Assembly (NCBI RefSeq): GCF_902713615.1
Contig: NC_052155.1
Span: forward strand, 55,506,315-55,570,314
DNA length: 64,000 bases
Origin: Scyliorhinus canicula
Taxonomy: Eukaryota
Direction: 5' to 3'
Of this stretch, positions 3,001 to 13,217 are shown one piece after another (the first letter of the stretch is position 1; each line of letters starts with the position of its first letter). The notes beneath the pieces were generated by a model. That model was not told where the DNA came from, did no database searches, and saw only the letters and a list, made by a program, of their open reading frames with translations. The position numbers and the translations under genes are program-made.

Positions 3001-6000
3001 CAGCCCCAGCCCCAGCCCCAGCCTGCTCTGATCAGCCCCAGCCCAGTCTGCTCTGATCAGCCCCAGCCCAATCTGCTCTGATTAGCCCCAGCCCAATCTG
3101 CTCTGATCAGCAAAGTGAGTGAAGGAGCTGATGGATAGAGGGGTAAACCTTCCCCAGCCCAGTCTGCTCTGATCAGCAGAGTGAAGGAGCTGATTGATAG
3201 AGGGGAAACCCTCCCCAGCCTAGTCTGATCTGATCAGCAGAGTGAGTGAAGGAGCTGATGGACAGAAGGGTGAACCTTCCCCAGCACAGACTGCTCTGAT
3301 CAGCAGAGTGAAGGAGCTGATGGATAGAGGGGTAAACCCTCCCCAGCCCAGACTGCTCTGATCAGCAGTGAAGGAGCTGATGGATAGAGGGGTAAACTTC
3401 CCCAGCCCAGACTGCTCTGATCAGCAGAGTGAAGAGCTGATGGATAGAGGGGTAACCTCCCCAGCCCAGACAGCTCTGATCAGCAAGTGAAGGAGCTGAT
3501 GGATAGAGGGTAAACCTTCCCCAGCCCAGACTGCTCTGTCAGCAGAGTGAAGGAGCTGATGGATAGAGGGGTAAACCCTTCCCCAGCCCAGTGCTCTGAT
3601 AGCAGAGTGAAGGAGCTGATGGATAGAGGGGTCCCTTCCCCAGCCCAGACTGCTCTGATCAGCAGAGTGAAGGAGCTGATGGATAGAGGGTAACCTTCCC
3701 CAGCCCAGTCTGCTCTGATCAGCAGAGTGAAGGAGCTGATGGATAGAGGGGTAAACCCCCAGCCCAGACTGCTCTGATCAGCAGTGAAGGAGCTGATGGA
3801 TAGAGGGGTAAGCCTCCCCAGCCCAGACTGCTCTGATCAGCAGAGAAGGAGCTGATGGATAGAGGGGTAAACCTCCCCAGCCCAGACTGCTCTGATCAGC
3901 AGAGTGAAGGAGCTGATGGATAGAGGGGTAAGCCTTCCCCAGCCCACTGCTCTGATCAGCAGTGAAGGAGCTGATGGATAGAGGGGTAAACTTCCCCAGC
4001 CCAGACTGCTCTGATCAGCAGAGTGAAGGAGCTGATGGATAGAGGGGTAACCTTCCCCAGCCCAGACTGCTCTGATCAGCAAGAGTGAAGGAGCTGATGG
4101 ATAGAGGGGTAACTTCCCCAGCCCAGACTGCTCTGATCAGCAGAGTGAAGGAGCTGATGGATAGGGGGTAAACCTCCCCAGCCCAGACTGCTCTGATCAG
4201 CAGAGTGAAGGAGCTGATGGATAGAGGGGTACCTTCCCCAGCCCACTGCTCTGATCAGCAGAGTGAAGGAGCTGATGGATAGAGGGTATCCCTTCCCCAG
4301 CCCAGTCTGCTCTGATCAGTAGAGTGAAGGAGCTGATGGATAGAGGGGTAAACCTTCCCCAGCCCAGACTGCTCGGATCAGCAGTGAAGGAGCTGATGGA
4401 TAGAGGGGTAAACCCTCCCCAGCCCAGACTGCTCTGATCAGCAGTGAAGGAGCTGATGGATAGAGGGTAAACCCTCCCCAGCCCACTGCTCTGATAGCAG
4501 TGAAGGAGCTGATGGATAGAGGGGTAAACTTCCCCAGCCCACTGCTCTGATCAGCAGAGTGAAGGAGCTGATGGATAGAGGGGTAACCTCCCCAGCCCAG
4601 ACAGCTGATCAGCAAAGTGAAGGAGCTGATGGATAGAGGGTAAACCTTCACCAGCCCAGACTGCTCTGTCAGCAGAGTGAAGGAGCTGATGGATAGAGGG
4701 GTAAACCTTCCCCAGCCCAGACTGCTCTGATCAGCAGAGTGTGTGAAGGAGCTGATGGATAGAGGGGTAAACCTTCCCCAGCCCAGACTGCTCTGGTCAG
4801 CAGAATGAAGGAGCTGATGGATAGAGGGGTAAGCCTTCCCCAGCCCAGTCTGCTCTGATCAGCAGAGTGTGTGAAGGAGCTGATGGATAGAGGGGTAAAC
4901 CCTCCCCAGCCCAGACTGCTCTGATCAGCAGAGTGAAGGAGCTGATGGATAGAGGGGTATCCCTTCCCCAGCCCAGTCTGCTCTGATCAGCAGAGTGAAG
5001 GAGCTGATGGATAGAGGGGTATCCCTTCCCCAGCCCAGTCTGCTCTGATCAGTAGAGTGAAGGAGCTGATGGATAGAGGGTAACCCTCCCCAGCCCAGAC
5101 TGCTCTGATCAGCAGTGAAGGAGCTGATGGATAGAGGGGTAAACCCTCCCCAGCCCACACTGCCGATAAGCAGTGAAGGAGCTGATGGATAGAGGGGTAA
5201 AACTTCCCCAGCCCAGACTGCTCTGATCAGCAGAGTGAAGGAGCTGATGGATAGAGGGGTAATTCCTCCCCAGCCCAGACAGCTCTGATCAGCAAAGTGA
5301 AGGAGCTGATGGATAGAGGGGTAAACCTTCCCCAGCCCAGACTGCTCTGATCAGCAGAGTGTGTGAAGGAGCTGATGGATAGAGGGGTAAACCCTCCCCA
5401 GCCCAGACTGCTCTGATCAGCAGAGTGAAGGAGCTGATGGATAGAGGGGTAATTCTCCCCAGCCCAGACAGCTCTGATCAGCAAAGTGAAGGAGCTGATG
5501 GATAGAGGGGTAAACCTTCCCCAGCCCAGACTCGATCAGCAGAGTGTGAAGGAGCTGATGGATAGAGGGGTAAACCTTCCCCAGCCCAGACTGCTCTGGT
5601 CAGCAGAGTGAAGGAGCTGATGGATAGAGGGGTAAGCCTTCCCCAGCCCAGTGCTCTGATCAGCAGAGTGTGTGAAGGAGCTGATGGATAGGGGGTAAGC
5701 CCTCCCCAGTCCAGACTGCTCTGATCAGCAGAGTGAAGGAGCTGATGGATAGAGGGGTATCCCTTCCCCAGCCCAGTCTGCTCTGATCAGCAGAGTGAAG
5801 GAGCTGATGGATAGAGGGGTATCCCTTCCCCAGCCCAGTCTGCTCTGATCAGTAGAGTGAAGGAGCTGATGGATAGAGGGGTAAACCTTCCCCAGCCCAC
5901 TGCTCTGATCAGCAGTGAAGGAGCTGATGGATAGAGGGGTAAACCCTCCCCAGCCCAGACTGCTCTGATCAGCAGTGAGGAGCTGATGGATAGAGGGGTA

Positions 6001-7316
6001 AACCCTTCCCCAGCCCAGACTGCTCTGATCAGCAGTGAAGGAGCTGATGGATAGAGGGGTAAACCCTCCCCAGCCCAGACTGCTCTGATCAGCAGAGTGA
6101 AGGAGCTGATGGATAGAGGGGTAAACCCTCCCCAGCCCAGACTGCTCTGATCAGCAGAGTGAAGGAGCTGATGGATAGAGGGGTAAGCCTTCCCCAGCCC
6201 AGTCTGCTCTGATCAGCAGAGTGTGTGAAGGAGCTGATGGATAGAGGGGTAAACCCTCCCCAGCCCAGTCTGCTCTGATCAGCAGTGACGGAGCTGATGG
6301 ATAGAGGGGTAAGCCTTCCCCAGCCCAGTCTGCTCTGATCAGCAGAGCGTGTGAAGGAGCTGATGGACAGAGGTGTAAACCTTTCCCAGCCCAGTCTGCT
6401 CTGATCAGCAGTGAAGGAGCTGATGGATAGAGGTGTAAACCTTTCCCAGCCCAGACTGCTCTGATCAGCAGTGTGTGTGAAGGAGCTGATGGATAGAGGG
6501 GTAAACCCTCCCCAGCCCAGTCTGCTCTGATCAGCAGAGTGAAGTAGCTGATGGATAGAGGGGTAAACCTCCCCAGCCCAGTCTGCTCTGATCAGCAGTG
6601 GAAGAAGCTGATGGATAGAGGGGTAAACCCTCCCCTGCCCAGTCTGCTCTGATCAGCAGAGTGAGTGAAGGGCTGATGGATCGAGGAGTAAGGCTTCCCC
6701 AGCCCAGACTGCTCTGATCAGCAGAGTGTGTGAAGGTTCTGATGGACAGAGGTGTAAACTGAAGGAGCTGATGGATAGAGGGGTAAACCGTCCCCAGCCC
6801 AGTCTACTCTGATCAGCAGAGTGTGTGAAGGAGCTGATGGATAGAGGGGTAAACCGTACCCAGCCCAGTCTACTCTGATCAGCAGTGTGTAAAGGAGCTG
6901 ATGGATAGAGGGGTAACCCTTCCCCTGCCCAGACTGCTCTGATCAGCAGAGTGTGTGAAGGAGCTGATGGATAGAGGGGTAAACCTTCCCCAGCCCAGTC
7001 TGCCCTGATCAGCAGTGACGGAGCTGATGGATAGAGGGGTAAACCTTCCCCAGCCCAGTCTGCTCTGATCAGCAGTGAGGGAGCTGATGGATAGAGGGGT
7101 AAACCCTCCCCAGCCCAGACTGCTCTGATCAGCAGTGTAGGAGTTGATGGATAGAGGGGTAAACCCTCCCCAGCCCAGTCTGCTCTGATCAGCAGTGAGG
7201 GAGCTGATGGATAGAGGGGTAAACCCTCCCCAGCCCAGACTGCACTGATCAGCAGTGAAGGAGCTGATGGATAGAGGGGTAACCCTTCTCCAGCCCAGAC
7301 TGCTCTGATCAGCAGC
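3001..7316. repeat. Minisatellite array, ~57-65 bp unit, about 70 copies
   Basis: Consensus cagcccagactgctctgatcagcagagtgaaggagctgatggatagaggggtaaaccttccc repeats from ~3090 to 7316. It is preceded by cagccc hexamers and ~24-bp subunits at 3001-3110. Confidence 0.98.
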
Positions 7317-7960
7317 AACGCCGAGGGGAGGAGCTCGAGTCTGTATTTTTATGTTATTTAGAGACCGTCGCTATTCCCGGCTCAGCTGCACTTCACTCCC
7401 CATGGGCCTCGAGACTTTGCCACTGGGTTTAAAAACGAATCTTCGCCTGATGTCGATGAGTGCATTCTGCCCGCCGAGGTACTGGCTTGTCTTAAACCCT
7501 GGGTGTGGGTGAGGCTGCGCTGTAAACACTCAGAGTTTTGTGTAAACAGTGAGCAATTTAATATGGGAGCAGCCAGTATTGGCTGTGGCAGGGGCAGTCT
7601 GTGCGGTCCGCTGCTGTTTATCTTCCCCGGAGCAGAGTGCACACATTGCTGTGTGTGCTTCCCGGTCGGAATCATTAAGGTGGGTACCCGGAGCGTGTTG
7701 GTTGATATTGTCGGAGAGGATTCACCTCAATACCCAGTTATTCTGACTGGCCTCTTTATTCACTGGTCCCATTCTGGAACATCTCTTCTTGCTCTCACAG
7801 GCCTTCGTTTCTTTCCCCAAGCCCGGTGCTCAGAAATTGGCACAATACTCCAGATTTAGGCCAATCCGGCTTGGCAAAGGCCCAGCAGCAAATTTATTTT
7901 CTGTTCTCGGGCCGACCTCCGAGTGCCTCTTCAAACAGACTACTCGACCCGCTGCGCCCC
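7317..7960. promoter_or_regulatory. CpG-retaining segment; candidate MTERF3/PTDSS1 promoter or non-coding first exon
   Basis: Unique sequence with many CpGs between the divergent genes. Plus-strand donor candidates are AAG|GTGGGT (7680) and GG|GTGAGG (7509). The TSS cannot be determined from sequence. Confidence 0.45.
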
Positions 7961-8527
7961 TTTAAGGACCTGTTTCTGTTCCTTCACCGCTTTTAGAATA
8001 GCCCCATTTCATTTATATTGACTCTCGCACATCCTACCAGCATTGTACGTAGCCATTTACGACACAGAAGGAGGCCATTTGGCCCATCGTGTATATGTTT
8101 GCGCTACTCAGAGCAAACCAGTCGTTTCCCCGCTCCATCACTGTAGCCCTGAAAGCCCTTCATGTATCCATCTGATTTCCTTTTGAAATGATTGATTGTG
8201 TTTACCACCCTCGTGCAGTATTTTACTTTCACCACCCTTGTGTAGCATAATAAAGGAGTTCTTCACTTTTGCACTGCATCTGTACCCAAAGTCTGTGTTC
8301 CCTAACCTTTGTCTACCTTACCTAAGCTGTAATAATCTTGTACACCTATTAATTTCCTTAACCACCTTTGTTCTACAGAGAACAACCCCAGCTCCTCCAG
8401 CCTAACCTTGCAGCTAAAATCCCTCATCCCTGGAATTATTCATAATTATTCAAGTAAATTACTTCTGCATCCTCTCAAGGACGCTTGCATCCTTTCTAAA
8501 GTGTGGTGACCAGAACTGTACACAATA

Positions 8528-10900
8528 TGCTCTAACCTCTCCAGTCCAGAAATCTATTGTTTGGAAAGACCGCTTGTCCGGAAATCTTTTCAGCAAACCC
8601 GGGAAACTCACCGGCTCGCCACTCGGCTGTTCGGGTGCTGCAGCAAATCGAGAAGGCATGGCCTCACCTAATCTACGGAGGCACGGGAATTTGTGAGCTG
8701 AGTTACTTTGTCATCTCATGCTGTTTTCCCCATGCTACACAGTCAGCTTTCACTTGCCATTTGCTACCCTCTGTTGCAGAGGTGCTTTTAAGTAGACCTA
8801 AGTATTCCCAGGGTATAGTTTAAAAAAAAATTTAAACTGTCACCATGACATCTAAGAAAAATGCAACAAAACGTAAACATGTCACACTGACAATATCGGA
8901 AAAGGTGGAAATCATAAAGAAACTAGATAAGGGTGCTTCGGTGAAAAGTTTGTGTGAGGTGTATGGTGTGGGTCTTTCAACAATTTACGACATCAGGAAA
9001 CAACGTGAAAAACTCTTTAAATTCTGTGCAGAAAGTGACACAGTTGAAGGAATTAGTGAGCGTAGAACACTGCATAGTGCTAAATCTGCTGACCATGATG
9101 GTGTGCTGTATGAATGGTTCCGACAGCACCGTAGTAAGGGGCTCCCTGTGTCAGGGACAATGCTTATGGAAAAGGCTAAAGAATTTCATACCGATTTGAG
9201 AATTAGTTCTGCCTGTGAGTACTCCCAAGGTTGGTTGCAAAAGTTCAAACATAGGCATGGGATTCACCTAAAAGCTACTGGCAAACAGCTTCTTGCTGAT
9301 AGAAAGGCTGTTGAATGTTATGTAACTGAGTTTGCGAAGTTGATGAAGGATGAGGGTCTTAGCCTAGAGCAGATATATAATGCGGACGAGACGGATGTTT
9401 TCTGGAGGTGCTTGCCACGAAGCACGCTTGCTGGTGCAGAGGGGACAGTGGTCCGCAATCGCAAAGAGTCAAAAGAAAGGCTCACAGTGCTCACATGTGC
9501 AAATGCTGCTGGAACACACAAGTGTAAACTCTTGGTTGTTGGTAAAAGTGCTAAACCTTGTGCTTTAAAAGGGATGAAAATCATGCCGGTGCTTTACGAG
9601 GCCAACAAATGGTCATGCGTCACTCAGGAGATCGTGAGTAACTGGTTCCATCATCATTTTGTCCCCGAGGCGCGTGCACACTCTCAAAAGATTGGGTTAG
9701 CTGCAGACTGCAAAATTGTGCTTCTTTTGGACAATTATTCAGCTCACCCCCCTGTAGAACAATTAGATGCTGACAATGTCTTCCCTACATATTTACCCAC
9801 TAGTTGCGCATCTTTAATTCAACCAATGGACCATGGAATTACTAAAGCAATGAAAAGCCACTACAGGAACAGTTTTTTACGTCGTCTTGTGAACAGCTAC
9901 AATACTGGTGGTGTTGATGCTTTTAAGAAGGCCGTCAATATCGAAGATGCTATTTTGTGTTTGGCAAATGCTTGGAACGGTGTCACTAGGAGAACCTTGC
10001 AAAATGCGTGGCATAAGTTGTGTCCTGCAAGTATGCTTAATGATGAGGATGCAGTGGAAAACATTGAAGGCTTTAATGTAAACAAGGCAAAGGCAGCTGA
10101 TCTCTTATGTTATGCCAAGCAAATGCAAAGTGTTGATTTAGACAAGCAAGATATTGTGACGTGGCTAAACGGTGAAGATGATGCTCCAGGTGTGCAGCAA
10201 GCAACAGATTCAGAGATAATAGAGATAGTTTTAGAGCCCAAGTCTGAGGATATTGGCAACAGCAAAACGGAAGATAATTTTTCTAATGAGATTAATGTGG
10301 AAGAGGGGATAAATCTAGCCTCTCGCTTCATTCGCTTTCTAGAGCAACAAAGTTTTATAAGCCATCAAGATGTAATGCATGTGCACCGAATCCAAGAGAA
10401 ATTAATAAAGAAGCAACTCAACCACAAGAAACAAATGAGGTTGCAACAAATGTTTGATGAAGTTGGAAAATCCTGTGCATGCACACCGTCAAAATCACCC
10501 AGTCCAATCCCATCAACCAGCAGACTGAATGAAACAAAGGAACCAGAATTAACTGCCCTTGCTGTTAATTATCACCCACTTTCTTCCATGCCCCTTCAAA
10601 CGATTAGTGCAAGAAAGCAGTGTATGGAATAGCCTGTTCCCTCAAAGTCATTGGTAGAATTTTGGTACAGTATCTGGGAGGAGAAACGTGGAAAATACAA
10701 TATTTGGACAAGTGAAACAAATTTAATTATTGCTTTATAACATTTTATCAATGTTTATGTTTCAGGTAAAATTTGAATCTACAGTATTTTCTGATCACAC
10801 ACTTGTGGTTAGGCATTCTAATGTCATTCTATATTCCAGAAAGTTCGGAAATCCATAAATGGCTTGATCCCAAGCATTCCAGACTGGAAAGGTTATAGTG
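8528..10900 (+). mobile_element. Full-length Tigger/pogo (Tc1-mariner superfamily) DNA transposon, 2373 bp
   Basis: TA at 8526-27 and 10901-02. The 24-bp TIRs (tgctctaacctctccagtccagaa vs cactataacctttccagtctggaa) match at 18/24. The flanks rejoin into a continuous CR1 sequence (cagaactgtacacaaTActctagttgtggcctaaccagag), and an uninterrupted paralogue is visible at 22272-22330. Confidence 0.93.
8845..10632 (+). CDS. Tigger/Jerky-like (TIGD2/JRKL/TIGD7-type) transposase-derived protein, 595 aa
   Basis: N-terminal CENP-B/psq HTH (RKHVTLTISEKVEIIKKLDKG..YGVGLSTIYDIRK) and a second HTH (LYEWFRQHRSKGLPVSG..GWLQKFKHRHGI). DDE_1 domain with NADET, LLLDN and QPMD (D..D32D). Kozak context gtcaccATG; no stops or frameshifts. 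Confidence 0.93.
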   Translation: MTSKKNATKRKHVTLTISEKVEIIKKLDKGASVKSLCEVYGVGLSTIYDIRKQREKLFKFCAESDTVEGISERRTLHSAKSADHDGVLYEWFRQHRSKGLPVSGTMLMEKAKEFHTDLRISSACEYSQGWLQKFKHRHGIHLKATGKQLLADRKAVECYVTEFAKLMKDEGLSLEQIYNADETDVFWRCLPRSTLAGAEGTVVRNRKESKERLTVLTCANAAGTHKCKLLVVGKSAKPCALKGMKIMPVLYEANKWSCVTQEIVSNWFHHHFVPEARAHSQKIGLAADCKIVLLLDNYSAHPPVEQLDADNVFPTYLPTSCASLIQPMDHGITKAMKSHYRNSFLRRLVNSYNTGGVDAFKKAVNIEDAILCLANAWNGVTRRTLQNAWHKLCPASMLNDEDAVENIEGFNVNKAKAADLLCYAKQMQSVDLDKQDIVTWLNGEDDAPGVQQATDSEIIEIVLEPKSEDIGNSKTEDNFSNEINVEEGINLASRFIRFLEQQSFISHQDVMHVHRIQEKLIKKQLNHKKQMRLQQMFDEVGKSCACTPSKSPSPIPSTSRLNETKEPELTALAVNYHPLSSMPLQTISARKQCME

Positions 10901-11450
10901 TACTCTAGTTGTGGCCTAACCAGAGCTGTATAAATGTTCAGCAGAATTTCCCTGCTTTTTTACTCAATGCCTCTATTTTATGAAGTTCAGGATCCCATAT
11001 GCTTTGCTAACTGCAGTCTCAATGTGTCCTGGCACCTTCAAAGATATATACACGTGCACCCTCGGGTCCCTTTATTCCTGTACACTATTTAGAAATGTGT
11101 CATTAAGTCTGTTCCTTCTTTCTATCTCTATGCCAAAATGTATCACCTCACCGTTTTATATATTAAATTCCATCTGCCAATTGTGTTCTCATTCAGCTAG
11201 TCTATCTAAGTCCTGTGGTGGTATGATCCTCACTGTTATCAAATCTGGAGGCGTGACAATGGCAAATTTTGAAATTTTACTCTATTCCAATATCTTAGTA
11301 ATTTATATATAGCAAAAATAATAATGGCCCTAGCACTGACCTTTTGGGGAAGACCACTATTGACCATTATCCAGTCTGAAAAATGACCATTTACCACAAC
11401 TCACCTTTTTTTCTGTTCCGAAACTATTTTTTTATCCAAGTGGACACTGG

Positions 11451-11697: not shown

Positions 11698-12889
11698 CTG
11701 CCCTATAACTTTTCTGAATTAAATATATCAGAGAGTCCTGTGGTCTTAACACTGACCCCTGGGCAAACATCATTGCATACTCCCCTCCCGTCTGGAAGAA
11801 CAGTTGTTTACCAGGACTCTACTTTCTTTACCTTAGCCAATTATGTATACATGCAACTGCTGTCGCTTTATTCCCATGGGCTTCAATATTGCTAACATGT
11901 CTATAATGTGGTGCTTTATTATGCATTTTGAAAATCCATTTATATCAGCTGCACTGCCGTTATCAACCCTGTCTGTTACTACATTAAGGACATTAACAAA
12001 GTTAGTCAAACACGATTTGCCTTAAACAAATCTGTGTGGACGTTTGTTTATTAATCTATTTGTTTCCAAGTGCCAACTCATTTTGTTTTATTTTTGTCTA
12101 GTCTTGTCATCAACGGCATTATGTGGCTTTCAGTTGTTGGCATCATCCCTCTCCGCAATTTTAAACAGGGATGCAATATTTCCAAGTTTCCTATCCTCTG
12201 GCACCACCCCCACATACAAGGAAGATTGGAAGATTGTGGCCAGTATCTCCTGTAATTTCTAGTAAAGCTTCCATCACTACTCTAGGGGCCAGCAGAACAT
12301 CCTCCTCCGACGAGATCTCCTGCAACCCCCTCCCAACAATCTATACCCCCTCCCCCGCTCCCCCATGTACCTGCCGTAGTCAAAGGACCACAACTGTGGC
12401 TTCTAGCCCTTCCGCAGAGAGATGGCCCATCCATGCTGATGGTTTTTTTGAGATTAAGGAAACACTGTTTAAAATGTGCATCAATGTCTCCTAACTACAT
12501 AGGCAGCTCCCACCCCTGACAGTGGTGGAGCACCTTCTATTGGCCCTCCAGCCTTGGAAGCTTGTCTGCGGTCGGTAATTGGATGGTGAATGGACACACC
12601 GGCTACTTGTTAAAAATCGTGTTGGCCATCAGGGTCATATCATCAGGGACGTAGTGCGGGGACCTGAAATTATATCCACTCCAGGGTCGTGACCTCAGAA
12701 AATCCAGCCCATGGTTTCCATTTCATATTTTGCTTTACTGTTTCAAATCTGTAAGTATTCAAAGGGGAAATGTTTTGAAACATTTAAAATTGTCTTTTAA
12801 CATAACCGTTACCAAACGTTTTATGGGTACAACTTGATGTTTACTTATCAAAATTTTTTGTTTACAGGATCATGGTAAATTGAACAAAA

Positions 12890-13217
12890 ATGTCCTCACT
12901 GTGCCATCGCATATGTTACCGTTGGTCTTCATTGAGAATCACTGGACTGGTTTTCTCTTCAAAGCAAGAAACAAAGGTGTTGCCTAAAGCATCATACAGT
13001 CTTCGATCTTGGTCTGGTTTAAATACACATCCATGCCTCTTAACTCAAAAACTCTGGAGGTTGGAAAATCCGAACTTGAATTCTTCAGCAGCAGACTCAC
13101 CACCAAGTGAGGAAGATGGCACTGCAAGGTTCACAGAAAGCAGTATTTTGCTAAACACAAACCAAAACCATGGCAAAACAGAACCATCTAGACTAGCCAT
13201 AGACGTACAACCTATGG
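12890..13217 (+). CDS. MTERF3: Mitochondrial transcription termination factor 3, first coding exon (328 bp)
   Basis: tttacAG acceptor at 12866-67, ATG at 12890, Arg/Ser/Leu-rich presequence-like N-terminus. G|GTAAGC donor at 13218, phase 1, in frame with the next exon. Confidence 0.85.

Follow-up and report, generated by a model that had tools for sequence, protein, structure and literature searches.

Transposases of the pogo/Tigger type have been recruited as host genes on several occasions, with CENP-B, JRK, JRKL and TIGD2-7, along with POGK and POGZ, as the established cases, and the catalogued examples are centred on tetrapods and mammals. In CSB-PGBD3, a piggyBac transposase is captured as an alternative exon in a host gene. 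Here we describe a locus in the catshark Scyliorhinus canicula, within a 64,000-nucleotide stretch of DNA (the window; NCBI RefSeq assembly GCF_902713615.1, contig NC_052155.1, positions 55,506,315 to 55,570,314 of the forward strand), in which a Tigger/pogo element of 2,373 bp at window positions 8528-10900 carries an intact transposase reading frame between PTDSS1 and MTERF3. We interpret it, with a probability of roughly 0.85, as a host gene derived from a single JRK-type DD32D Tigger/pogo transposon through a lineage-specific domestication in galeomorph sharks.

Recurrent domestication of pogo transposases is well documented (PMC7386202, PMC4231638). The survey of Gao et al. 2020 (PMC7386202) lists twelve pogo-derived vertebrate genes, none of them shark-specific; cartilaginous fish are represented only by "JRK pseudogenes", relatives were scored as transposons or pseudogenes, and sequences with terminal inverted repeats (TIRs) and target-site duplications (TSDs) were counted as transposons. 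In the same survey JRK has a DD32D/E triad and a Ka/Ks of 0.207, and CENP-B and TIGD3-5 are without a recognisable triad. Tigger elements of sharks were described by Diaby et al. 2022 (PMC9219625), with TA duplications, ends of 18-23 nucleotides (nt) and proteins of up to 585 amino acids (aa), in hosts that include Scyliorhinus torazame, Carcharodon and Chiloscyllium. The shark elements of that study have CAGTA... ends (CAGTAAGTCC...), proteins of 306-560 aa and lengths of 2.1-3.4 kb, and are treated as mobile or horizontally transferred. Our literature searches found no published description of a shark transposase gene between PTDSS1 and MTERF3.

The reading frame, its orthologs and its constraint

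The open reading frame (ORF) is 1788 nt long including the stop codon, encodes 595 aa, and is uninterrupted by a stop or frameshift; it starts with an ATG of its own, in the context CACCATG, and ends with a stop codon of its own. It is by a wide margin the longest ORF of the window, the runner-up being a 221-aa frame within a minisatellite. A Pfam scan finds CENP-B_N (aa 9-60, E = 6.5e-10), HTH_Tnp_Tc5 (aa 87-143, E = 2e-14) and DDE_1 (aa 210-389, E = 1.5e-42) and no mTERF domain, and these domains together with the fold matches given below place the protein in the Tigger family of the pogo superfamily. The predicted catalytic triad is formed by D181 (NADETD), D296 (LLLDN) and D329 (QPMD), with a DD32D spacing that lies within the pogo/Tigger range of about 30-36 residues between the second and third aspartates, and all three columns are at least 90% conserved in an alignment of 75 homologs. 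A first-pass annotation, made from the sequence alone, had reported this intact frame with both helix-turn-helix (HTH) domains and the full triad, and the Pfam matches and motif positions agree with it.

The only relative of solved structure detected by sequence is the DNA-binding domain of CENP-B (PDB 1hlv, E = 4e-08). An AlphaFold2 model has a mean pLDDT (the per-residue model confidence) of 75.9, rising to ~90 in the DNA-binding and RNase-H-fold cores, and includes strands E177-186, E212-220, E291-296 and E312-317 at a pLDDT of about 90; D181 is placed on the first strand, D296 ends the fourth strand, and D329 lies just ahead of the next helix. When the model was searched with Foldseek, it matched CENP-B(1-129) in 1hlv with a TM score of 0.81 and an rmsd of 2.4, as well as the catalytic domains of Mos1, Sleeping Beauty and SETMAR.

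Protein searches gave a single close relative per species in four other sharks: Scyliorhinus torazame (95% identity, 595 aa), Carcharodon carcharias (83%, 598 aa), Chiloscyllium punctatum (72%, 597 aa, named "MTERF3 isoform X1") and Stegostoma tigrinum (72% in the search and 73% in the alignment, 596 aa, marked "LOW QUALITY PROTEIN"). The next matches are at 49-50% (several Latimeria copies) and 46% (mammalian JRK and skate "jerky"), and a search with the N-terminal 200 aa gave no truncated shark orthologs. In all four species, as in the catshark, its neighbours are a PSS-domain gene (minus strand) on one side and an mTERF-domain gene (plus strand) on the other, and it is a single copy at a syntenic position in five species of three orders (Carcharhiniformes, Lamniformes and Orectolobiformes), carried in the NCBI annotation under automatic, generic names. 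The orthologous site, which the first-pass annotation had expected to be informative, is occupied in all four other sharks, with the frame intact in three and interrupted by one 1-nt deletion in Stegostoma.

At the DNA level we compared the window with the Stegostoma locus (L001). The two are colinear from the upstream exon past the element, through both halves of the repeat that it splits, both of its ends and the ORF, and we conclude that there was one insertion, before Orectolobiformes split from Carcharhiniformes and Lamniformes. That split dates back roughly 200 million years or more. The copy has been inherited vertically at one locus, and the fixed synteny implies that the element is immobile.

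Word depth in a DNA sequencing run is 4.7-8.3 across the interior of the element and 4.2-6.4 in the unique flank at 7298-7893, and two nearby repeats reach 312 and 7608 in the same run. Elsewhere in the window neither the element nor its protein occurs again, and the protein cluster at 90% identity has two members, from the catshark and S. torazame. Because depth is that of a single copy and the cluster holds only two proteins, there is no young multi-copy family of the kind that had been put forward as a refutation of the host-gene idea; the element is single-copy.

All measures of selection come from one species pair, the window and Stegostoma. The ORF is 81% identical (Kimura two-parameter distance, K2P, 0.22) with 2.2 indel events per kb, the non-coding parts of the element are 69-72% identical (K2P 0.37-0.42) with 21-28 events per kb, and the flanks are 65% identical (K2P 0.49) with 24-33 events per kb. 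Indels are therefore a tenth as frequent in the ORF as in non-coding DNA (21-33 per kb), and three of its four events, of 1, 6, 3 and 3 nt, are in frame. Identity at the three codon positions is 83.7, 86.9 and 72.9%, with third positions diverging at a level like that of the flanks. The dN/dS ratio is 0.247 by the NG86 method (dN 0.144, dS 0.583), 0.307 by YN00 and 0.302 by maximum likelihood, and the dS of 0.44-0.58 matches the non-coding K2P of 0.37-0.49; a codon bootstrap of 300 replicates gives a 95% interval of 0.19-0.32 and a maximum of 0.36. By segment, the ratio is lowest in the DNA-binding domains (0.15, aa 1-150); the catalytic domain has 0.30 and the C-terminus 0.28. In a neutral simulation the ORF stayed free of stops in 5% of cases at 0.05 substitutions per site, in 0.08% at 0.15, and in about 1e-5 at 0.25 per lineage, half of the observed dS.

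This comparison shows that the 595-aa frame is maintained by purifying selection on the protein. Since both sequences descend from one insertion, the constraint acted after that insertion and at the level of the host, and not among transposon copies, and the codon-position pattern and the in-frame indels show the protein, and not RNA or DNA elements, to be its target. The first-pass annotation had reasoned that a neutral copy of this age should be broken and that the frame might be under purifying selection; the simulation and the dN/dS ratio, which is far from 1, bear out both parts of that argument.

Placed in a tree together with 43 relatives, the five syntenic shark proteins group with full support on a stem of 0.34, in the order (catshark, S. 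torazame), Carcharodon, (Chiloscyllium, Stegostoma), which is that of the species tree. This clade is separate from mammalian JRK and the skate proteins, from JRKL, itself on a long and distant branch, and from the copies of coelacanth. Orthology to mammalian JRK was considered and rejected, given the separate, fully supported clade and an insertion of its own in a shark repeat between PTDSS1 and MTERF3; the gene is an independent recruitment in the shark lineage from the JRK-type Tigger lineage. The proposal of a lineage-specific host gene that still has its TIRs is supported, with the refinement that the gene reaches beyond the species and genus and spans at least three orders.

A separate observation from the tree concerns the skate "jerky" proteins (P0023 and P0028), which sit on short branches near mammalian (rodent) JRK (P0021, P0027 and P0033), nearer than frog and reptile sequences do. 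This closeness is odd under vertical descent and recalls the horizontal-transfer claims made for Tigger in PMC9219625.

Ends, transcription and features of the locus

The element has the short inverted ends and the TA duplication that characterise pogo/Tigger transposons (Table 1). When aligned by eye as 24-mers, one end against the reverse complement of the other, the ends are mismatched at positions 1, 2, 5, 12, 20 and 21, and a repeat search recovers them at 8530-8551 and 10877-10898 with 82% identity over 22 nt. The mismatches at 1-2 and 20-21 pair TG with CA, as decay of a CpG would produce, so that the earlier description of TA-flanked TIRs with six differences, four of them, including the two terminal bases, fitting such decay, is accurate. 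The flanks of the element are a dispersed repeat, a putative CR1 according to the first-pass annotation (DNA word depth 312 in the left-flank bin), and contigs of the DNA run that derive from other copies of this repeat join 8509-8526 directly to 10901-10903; these are paralogous empty sites.

In Stegostoma an 11-nt deletion took the outermost bases of the right end together with the TA, so that constraint does not act on the ends. Conservation of the ends for a function was rejected, their identity to Stegostoma (65% and 83%, over ~24 nt each) being indistinguishable from neutral. The terminal dinucleotides differ and the right terminus is deleted in one species; the inverted ends and TA duplications, still recognisable, are probably slowly decaying relics without function.

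At least 11 RNA-type runs from at least five studies contain 96-100% of the words sampled from the element. Two of these runs, which belong to separate studies, yield contigs of 2898 and 2912 nt that are colinear with 8066-10977, and further RNA contigs cover 7686-8092. RNA word depth rises from zero at 7298-7595 to 12-19 between about 7600 and 11020 (12-15 over the ORF) and falls to 0.3-4 beyond; the first bin covered by RNA contigs is 7596-7744, and the DNA run covers all of these regions. One RNA-type run labelled as another organism contains 73% of the element's 31-mers and may come from a very close relative or reflect a labelling issue.

The start of RNA coverage coincides with a block that sensitive blastn aligns between the two species (window 7606-7887, L001 8863-9143), the first part of which, 7606-7679, may be a first exon that the gene has in common with a distal isoform of MTERF3. 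The NCBI mTERF models of S. torazame and Chiloscyllium begin upstream of the transposase ORF; that of Chiloscyllium starts 1066 nt upstream of the transposase ATG, an offset that matches an ATG at L001 8933, 1068 nt upstream in Stegostoma. These features tentatively suggest that transcription begins at a host promoter and first exon, some 1.2 kb upstream of the ATG, and not at the transposon end, and the gene would then lie in sense orientation within the first intron of the distal MTERF3 isoform. Fusion with MTERF3 was considered and rejected, the transposase ORF having its own stop and no mTERF domain.

Two further sites bear on MTERF3 itself. ATGs at 7450 and 7456, followed by GAG|GT at 7479-7480, correspond roughly to the start of the S. 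torazame mTERF model, 1382 nt upstream of the transposase ATG, and 7450-7480 could be another alternative first exon of MTERF3 at a still more distal position. The block at 12576-12814 (L001 12641-12875) is 75% identical to Stegostoma; its end, at about 12751 and a short way upstream of MTERF3 exon 2, reads CT|GTAAGT, and it is probably the proximal first exon and promoter.

Table 1. Features of the element and its surroundings in the window; L001 is the Stegostoma locus.
Feature	Position	Strand	Evidence and remarks
Candidate first exon	7606..7679	+	blastn, sequence, start of RNA coverage; GT donor 7680-7681, common to Stegostoma (TTCCCGGTCGGAAT.ATTA.G|GTG.GTAC)
Left TA target-site duplication	8526..8527	.	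Sequence; repeat resumes past the right TA; in DNA contigs of other repeat copies 8525/8526 is joined to 10903
Left TIR, degenerate, terminal dinucleotide TG	8528..8551	+	18/24 identical to right end; Stegostoma L001 about 9668-9693, 65% identity, the level of neutral flank
28-nt block in the 5' non-coding part of the element	8633..8660	+	26/28 identical to Stegostoma; surrounding non-coding DNA about 69%
Candidate 3' splice site (pyrimidine run and CAG)	8766..8779	+	AG at 8778-8779, 65 nt before the ATG; CTGCAG|RGGTG shared with Stegostoma
Intact transposase-derived ORF, 595 aa	8845..10632	+	ORF list, Pfam, homologs, selection tests
Two HTH DNA-binding domains (CENP-B_N, HTH_Tnp_Tc5)	8869..9273	+	Pfam, 1hlv, Foldseek, dN/dS 0.15 for aa 1-150
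RNase-H-fold catalytic domain, aa 177-389, with D181, D296 and D329	9373..10011	+	Pfam DDE_1, motifs, AlphaFold2, Foldseek
C-terminal helices, aa 485-544	10297..10476	+	Near-invariant across five sharks in the protein alignment; AlphaFold2 pLDDT 80-94
Right TIR	10877..10900	-	Sequence, repeat search
Right TA target-site duplication	10901..10902	.	Sequence
MTERF3 first coding exon (neighbour, outside the element)	12868..13100 (provisional end)	+	Acceptor AG 12866-12867, ATG 12890; 80% identical to L001 13349-13732

The neighbouring genes were identified by Pfam: PTDSS1 upstream, with a PSS domain, on the minus strand with its coding sequence starting near 2323, and MTERF3 downstream, with an mTERF domain, on the plus strand. 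A minisatellite of 4.2 kb at 3086-7315 separates the start of PTDSS1 from the upstream exon of the transposase/MTERF3 unit. It has a unit of 60-62 nt in about 60-70 copies (86-90% match), a GC content of 0.56 and almost no CpG, and the corresponding interval in Stegostoma is about 3 kb shorter and has no blastn match to it. A short repeat of very high copy number lies at 8043-8191 (DNA word depth 7608, depth in RNA runs 253-741), and all contigs break there, at about 8058-8095.

Points against domestication and competing readings

Several observations weigh against a domesticated gene. The protein collection contains no annotated ortholog in whale shark, skates or other chondrichthyans, and under the rule of PMC7386202 the catshark locus, with its recognisable ends and duplications, would be classed as a transposon. 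The dN/dS estimate comes from a single species pair, and the protein's molecular function is inferred in its entirety. The RNA results also cut both ways. The first-pass annotation had proposed RNA sequencing as a check, and runs of several studies do contain the whole element, but the same runs contain 97-100% of a downstream control stretch at 11700-12500, a raw oligo-dT run gave only nine reads, none of them in the ORF, and the RNA contigs, which lack strand, include no spliced joint. Because the control is covered equally, coverage of the element may be that of pre-mRNA of a long MTERF3 isoform, and the evidence for a mature mRNA of the transposase gene is equivocal.

The Stegostoma ortholog is a further point of this kind. 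A 1-nt deletion at codon 160 interrupts its ORF (L001 10001-11793) and goes with the NCBI low-quality flag, and its protein carries D296N and D329N, whereas all three aspartates are kept in the other four species; the gene may be dispensable or decaying in this shark. The deletion lies outside any homopolymer and exactly between the DNA-binding and catalytic domains, leaving ORFs of 165 aa, with the DNA-binding domains only, and 440 aa. The terminal branch of Stegostoma is not longer than that of Chiloscyllium (0.077 versus 0.10), and the lineage-specific changes are distributed differently between the first 160 residues and the remainder (3 and 30 in Stegostoma, 15 and 22 in Chiloscyllium; Fisher p = 0.003), the N-terminal part being unusually conserved in Stegostoma. 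This pattern fits either a recent loss of the catalytic part with a retained DNA-binding product or incipient pseudogenisation.

We nevertheless favour a host gene, and envisage its origin as follows. A transposon inserted at a TA within a dispersed repeat in the PTDSS1-MTERF3 interval before the orectolobiform, lamniform and carcharhiniform sharks diverged. The two CENP-B-type HTH domains may make the protein a nuclear factor that binds DNA in a sequence-specific way; these domains are under the strongest constraint and are still tightly conserved in the zebra shark, Stegostoma. The RNase-H-fold domain and the C-terminal helices could serve as a structural or oligomerisation module.

As the triad is kept in four of five species, catalysis may persist. 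An alternative is that galeomorph sharks have kept the protein for ~200 million years as a catalytically competent nuclease or recombinase along with remnants of the ends, its targets being scattered sites of Tigger origin or the locus itself, at the head of MTERF3, and that the zebra shark is shifting to a DNA-binding-only product; we regard this as unlikely.

We give a small chance to the idea that the locus matters only as part of MTERF3, as an intron-1 transposon transcribed solely in MTERF3 pre-mRNA or used as an alternative terminal exon, with the selection tied to MTERF3 regulation. The name given by NCBI to the Chiloscyllium protein, the mTERF models that start upstream of the ORF, the donor and acceptor shared with Stegostoma, and RNA-run contigs that include, in addition, the DNA from the element to MTERF3 exon 2 are all consistent with it. 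The codon-position pattern and in-frame indels, in contrast, show that it is the encoded protein that is constrained, ATG and stop both belong to the ORF itself, to which no mTERF domain is fused, and the fall in RNA depth past about 11020 hints at a separate 3' end. This alternative largely complements the interpretation as a host gene, as it concerns how such a gene is expressed.

A transposon that is still autonomous or was active recently, its ORF intact through youth or through selection among copies, would account for the complete domain set, the DD32D triad, the TA duplications and the presence of both ends, and there are related multi-copy elements in coelacanth and reports of Tigger in sharks (PMC9219625). 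It is nonetheless very improbable: depth is that of a single copy, the insertion is orthologous in Stegostoma within the same split repeat, 6 of 24 positions, the terminal dinucleotide among them, do not match between the ends, parts of which Stegostoma has lost by deletion, divergence between orthologous copies reflects only host-level selection after insertion, and the shark Tiggers of PMC9219625 have different ends and 560-aa proteins. A neutrally decaying old Tigger relic with its frame open by chance would explain why the non-coding parts and the ends have decayed as the flanks have (65-72% identity to Stegostoma) and would be helped by the slow evolution of shark genomes, but it is strongly disfavoured, to the point of being scarcely tenable, by a dN/dS of 0.25-0.31 with no bootstrap value above 0.36, by 73% identity at third codon positions against 84-87% at the first two, by the tenfold deficit of indels and the chance of about 1e-5 per lineage of escaping a stop, and by a frame that is open in four independent lineages.

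Comparison with described transposase-derived genes and elements

The locus adds an independent and ancient domestication in the shark lineage to a process that is well known to recur. Its founding insertion is unusually legible, with the TSD, both ends and the split host repeat all surviving and a series of orthologs over three orders, and it also shows that, where genomes evolve slowly, domesticated genes will be overlooked if a screen discards everything that has TIRs and TSDs. Stegostoma appears to be shedding the catalytic half, and four species with an intact triad set against one with a frameshift and two lost aspartates constitute a natural experiment on which domain is under selection.

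The shark Tiggers of PMC9219625 resemble the catshark element at the level of the Tigger family, in their TA duplications and in part of their host species, but the catshark locus has other ends and is a fixed syntenic gene, and they are not the same elements. CSB-PGBD3 offers a likeness in arrangement, with a transposase ORF in sense orientation in a host intron, a 3' splice site ahead of it, recognisable ends, and a host promoter that can drive it. It belongs to another superfamily, and splicing at the shark locus is represented by candidate sites only; moreover, no in-frame fusion would be possible in the shark, because the upstream exon is non-coding or opens no more than a very short ORF, which terminates ahead of the transposase ATG.

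The closer parallels are with pogo-derived genes. In JRKL/TIGD2, the other TIGD genes and CENP-B, as here, pogo transposases have become single-copy host genes with their DNA-binding domains kept, and the N-terminal fold of the shark protein matches the DNA-binding domain of CENP-B; the triad, however, was lost in CENP-B and TIGD3-5 and is kept in four of the five shark orthologs. JRK shares with the shark proteins the domain order CENP-B_N, HTH_Tnp_Tc5, DDE_1, the DD32D spacing and about 46% identity, and is similar in length (530-570 aa, against 595 in the shark) and in the strength of selection (Ka/Ks 0.207, against 0.25-0.31). The shark proteins differ from it in lying outside the JRK clade, between PTDSS1 and MTERF3, and in retaining the ends and TA duplications of an insertion of their own.

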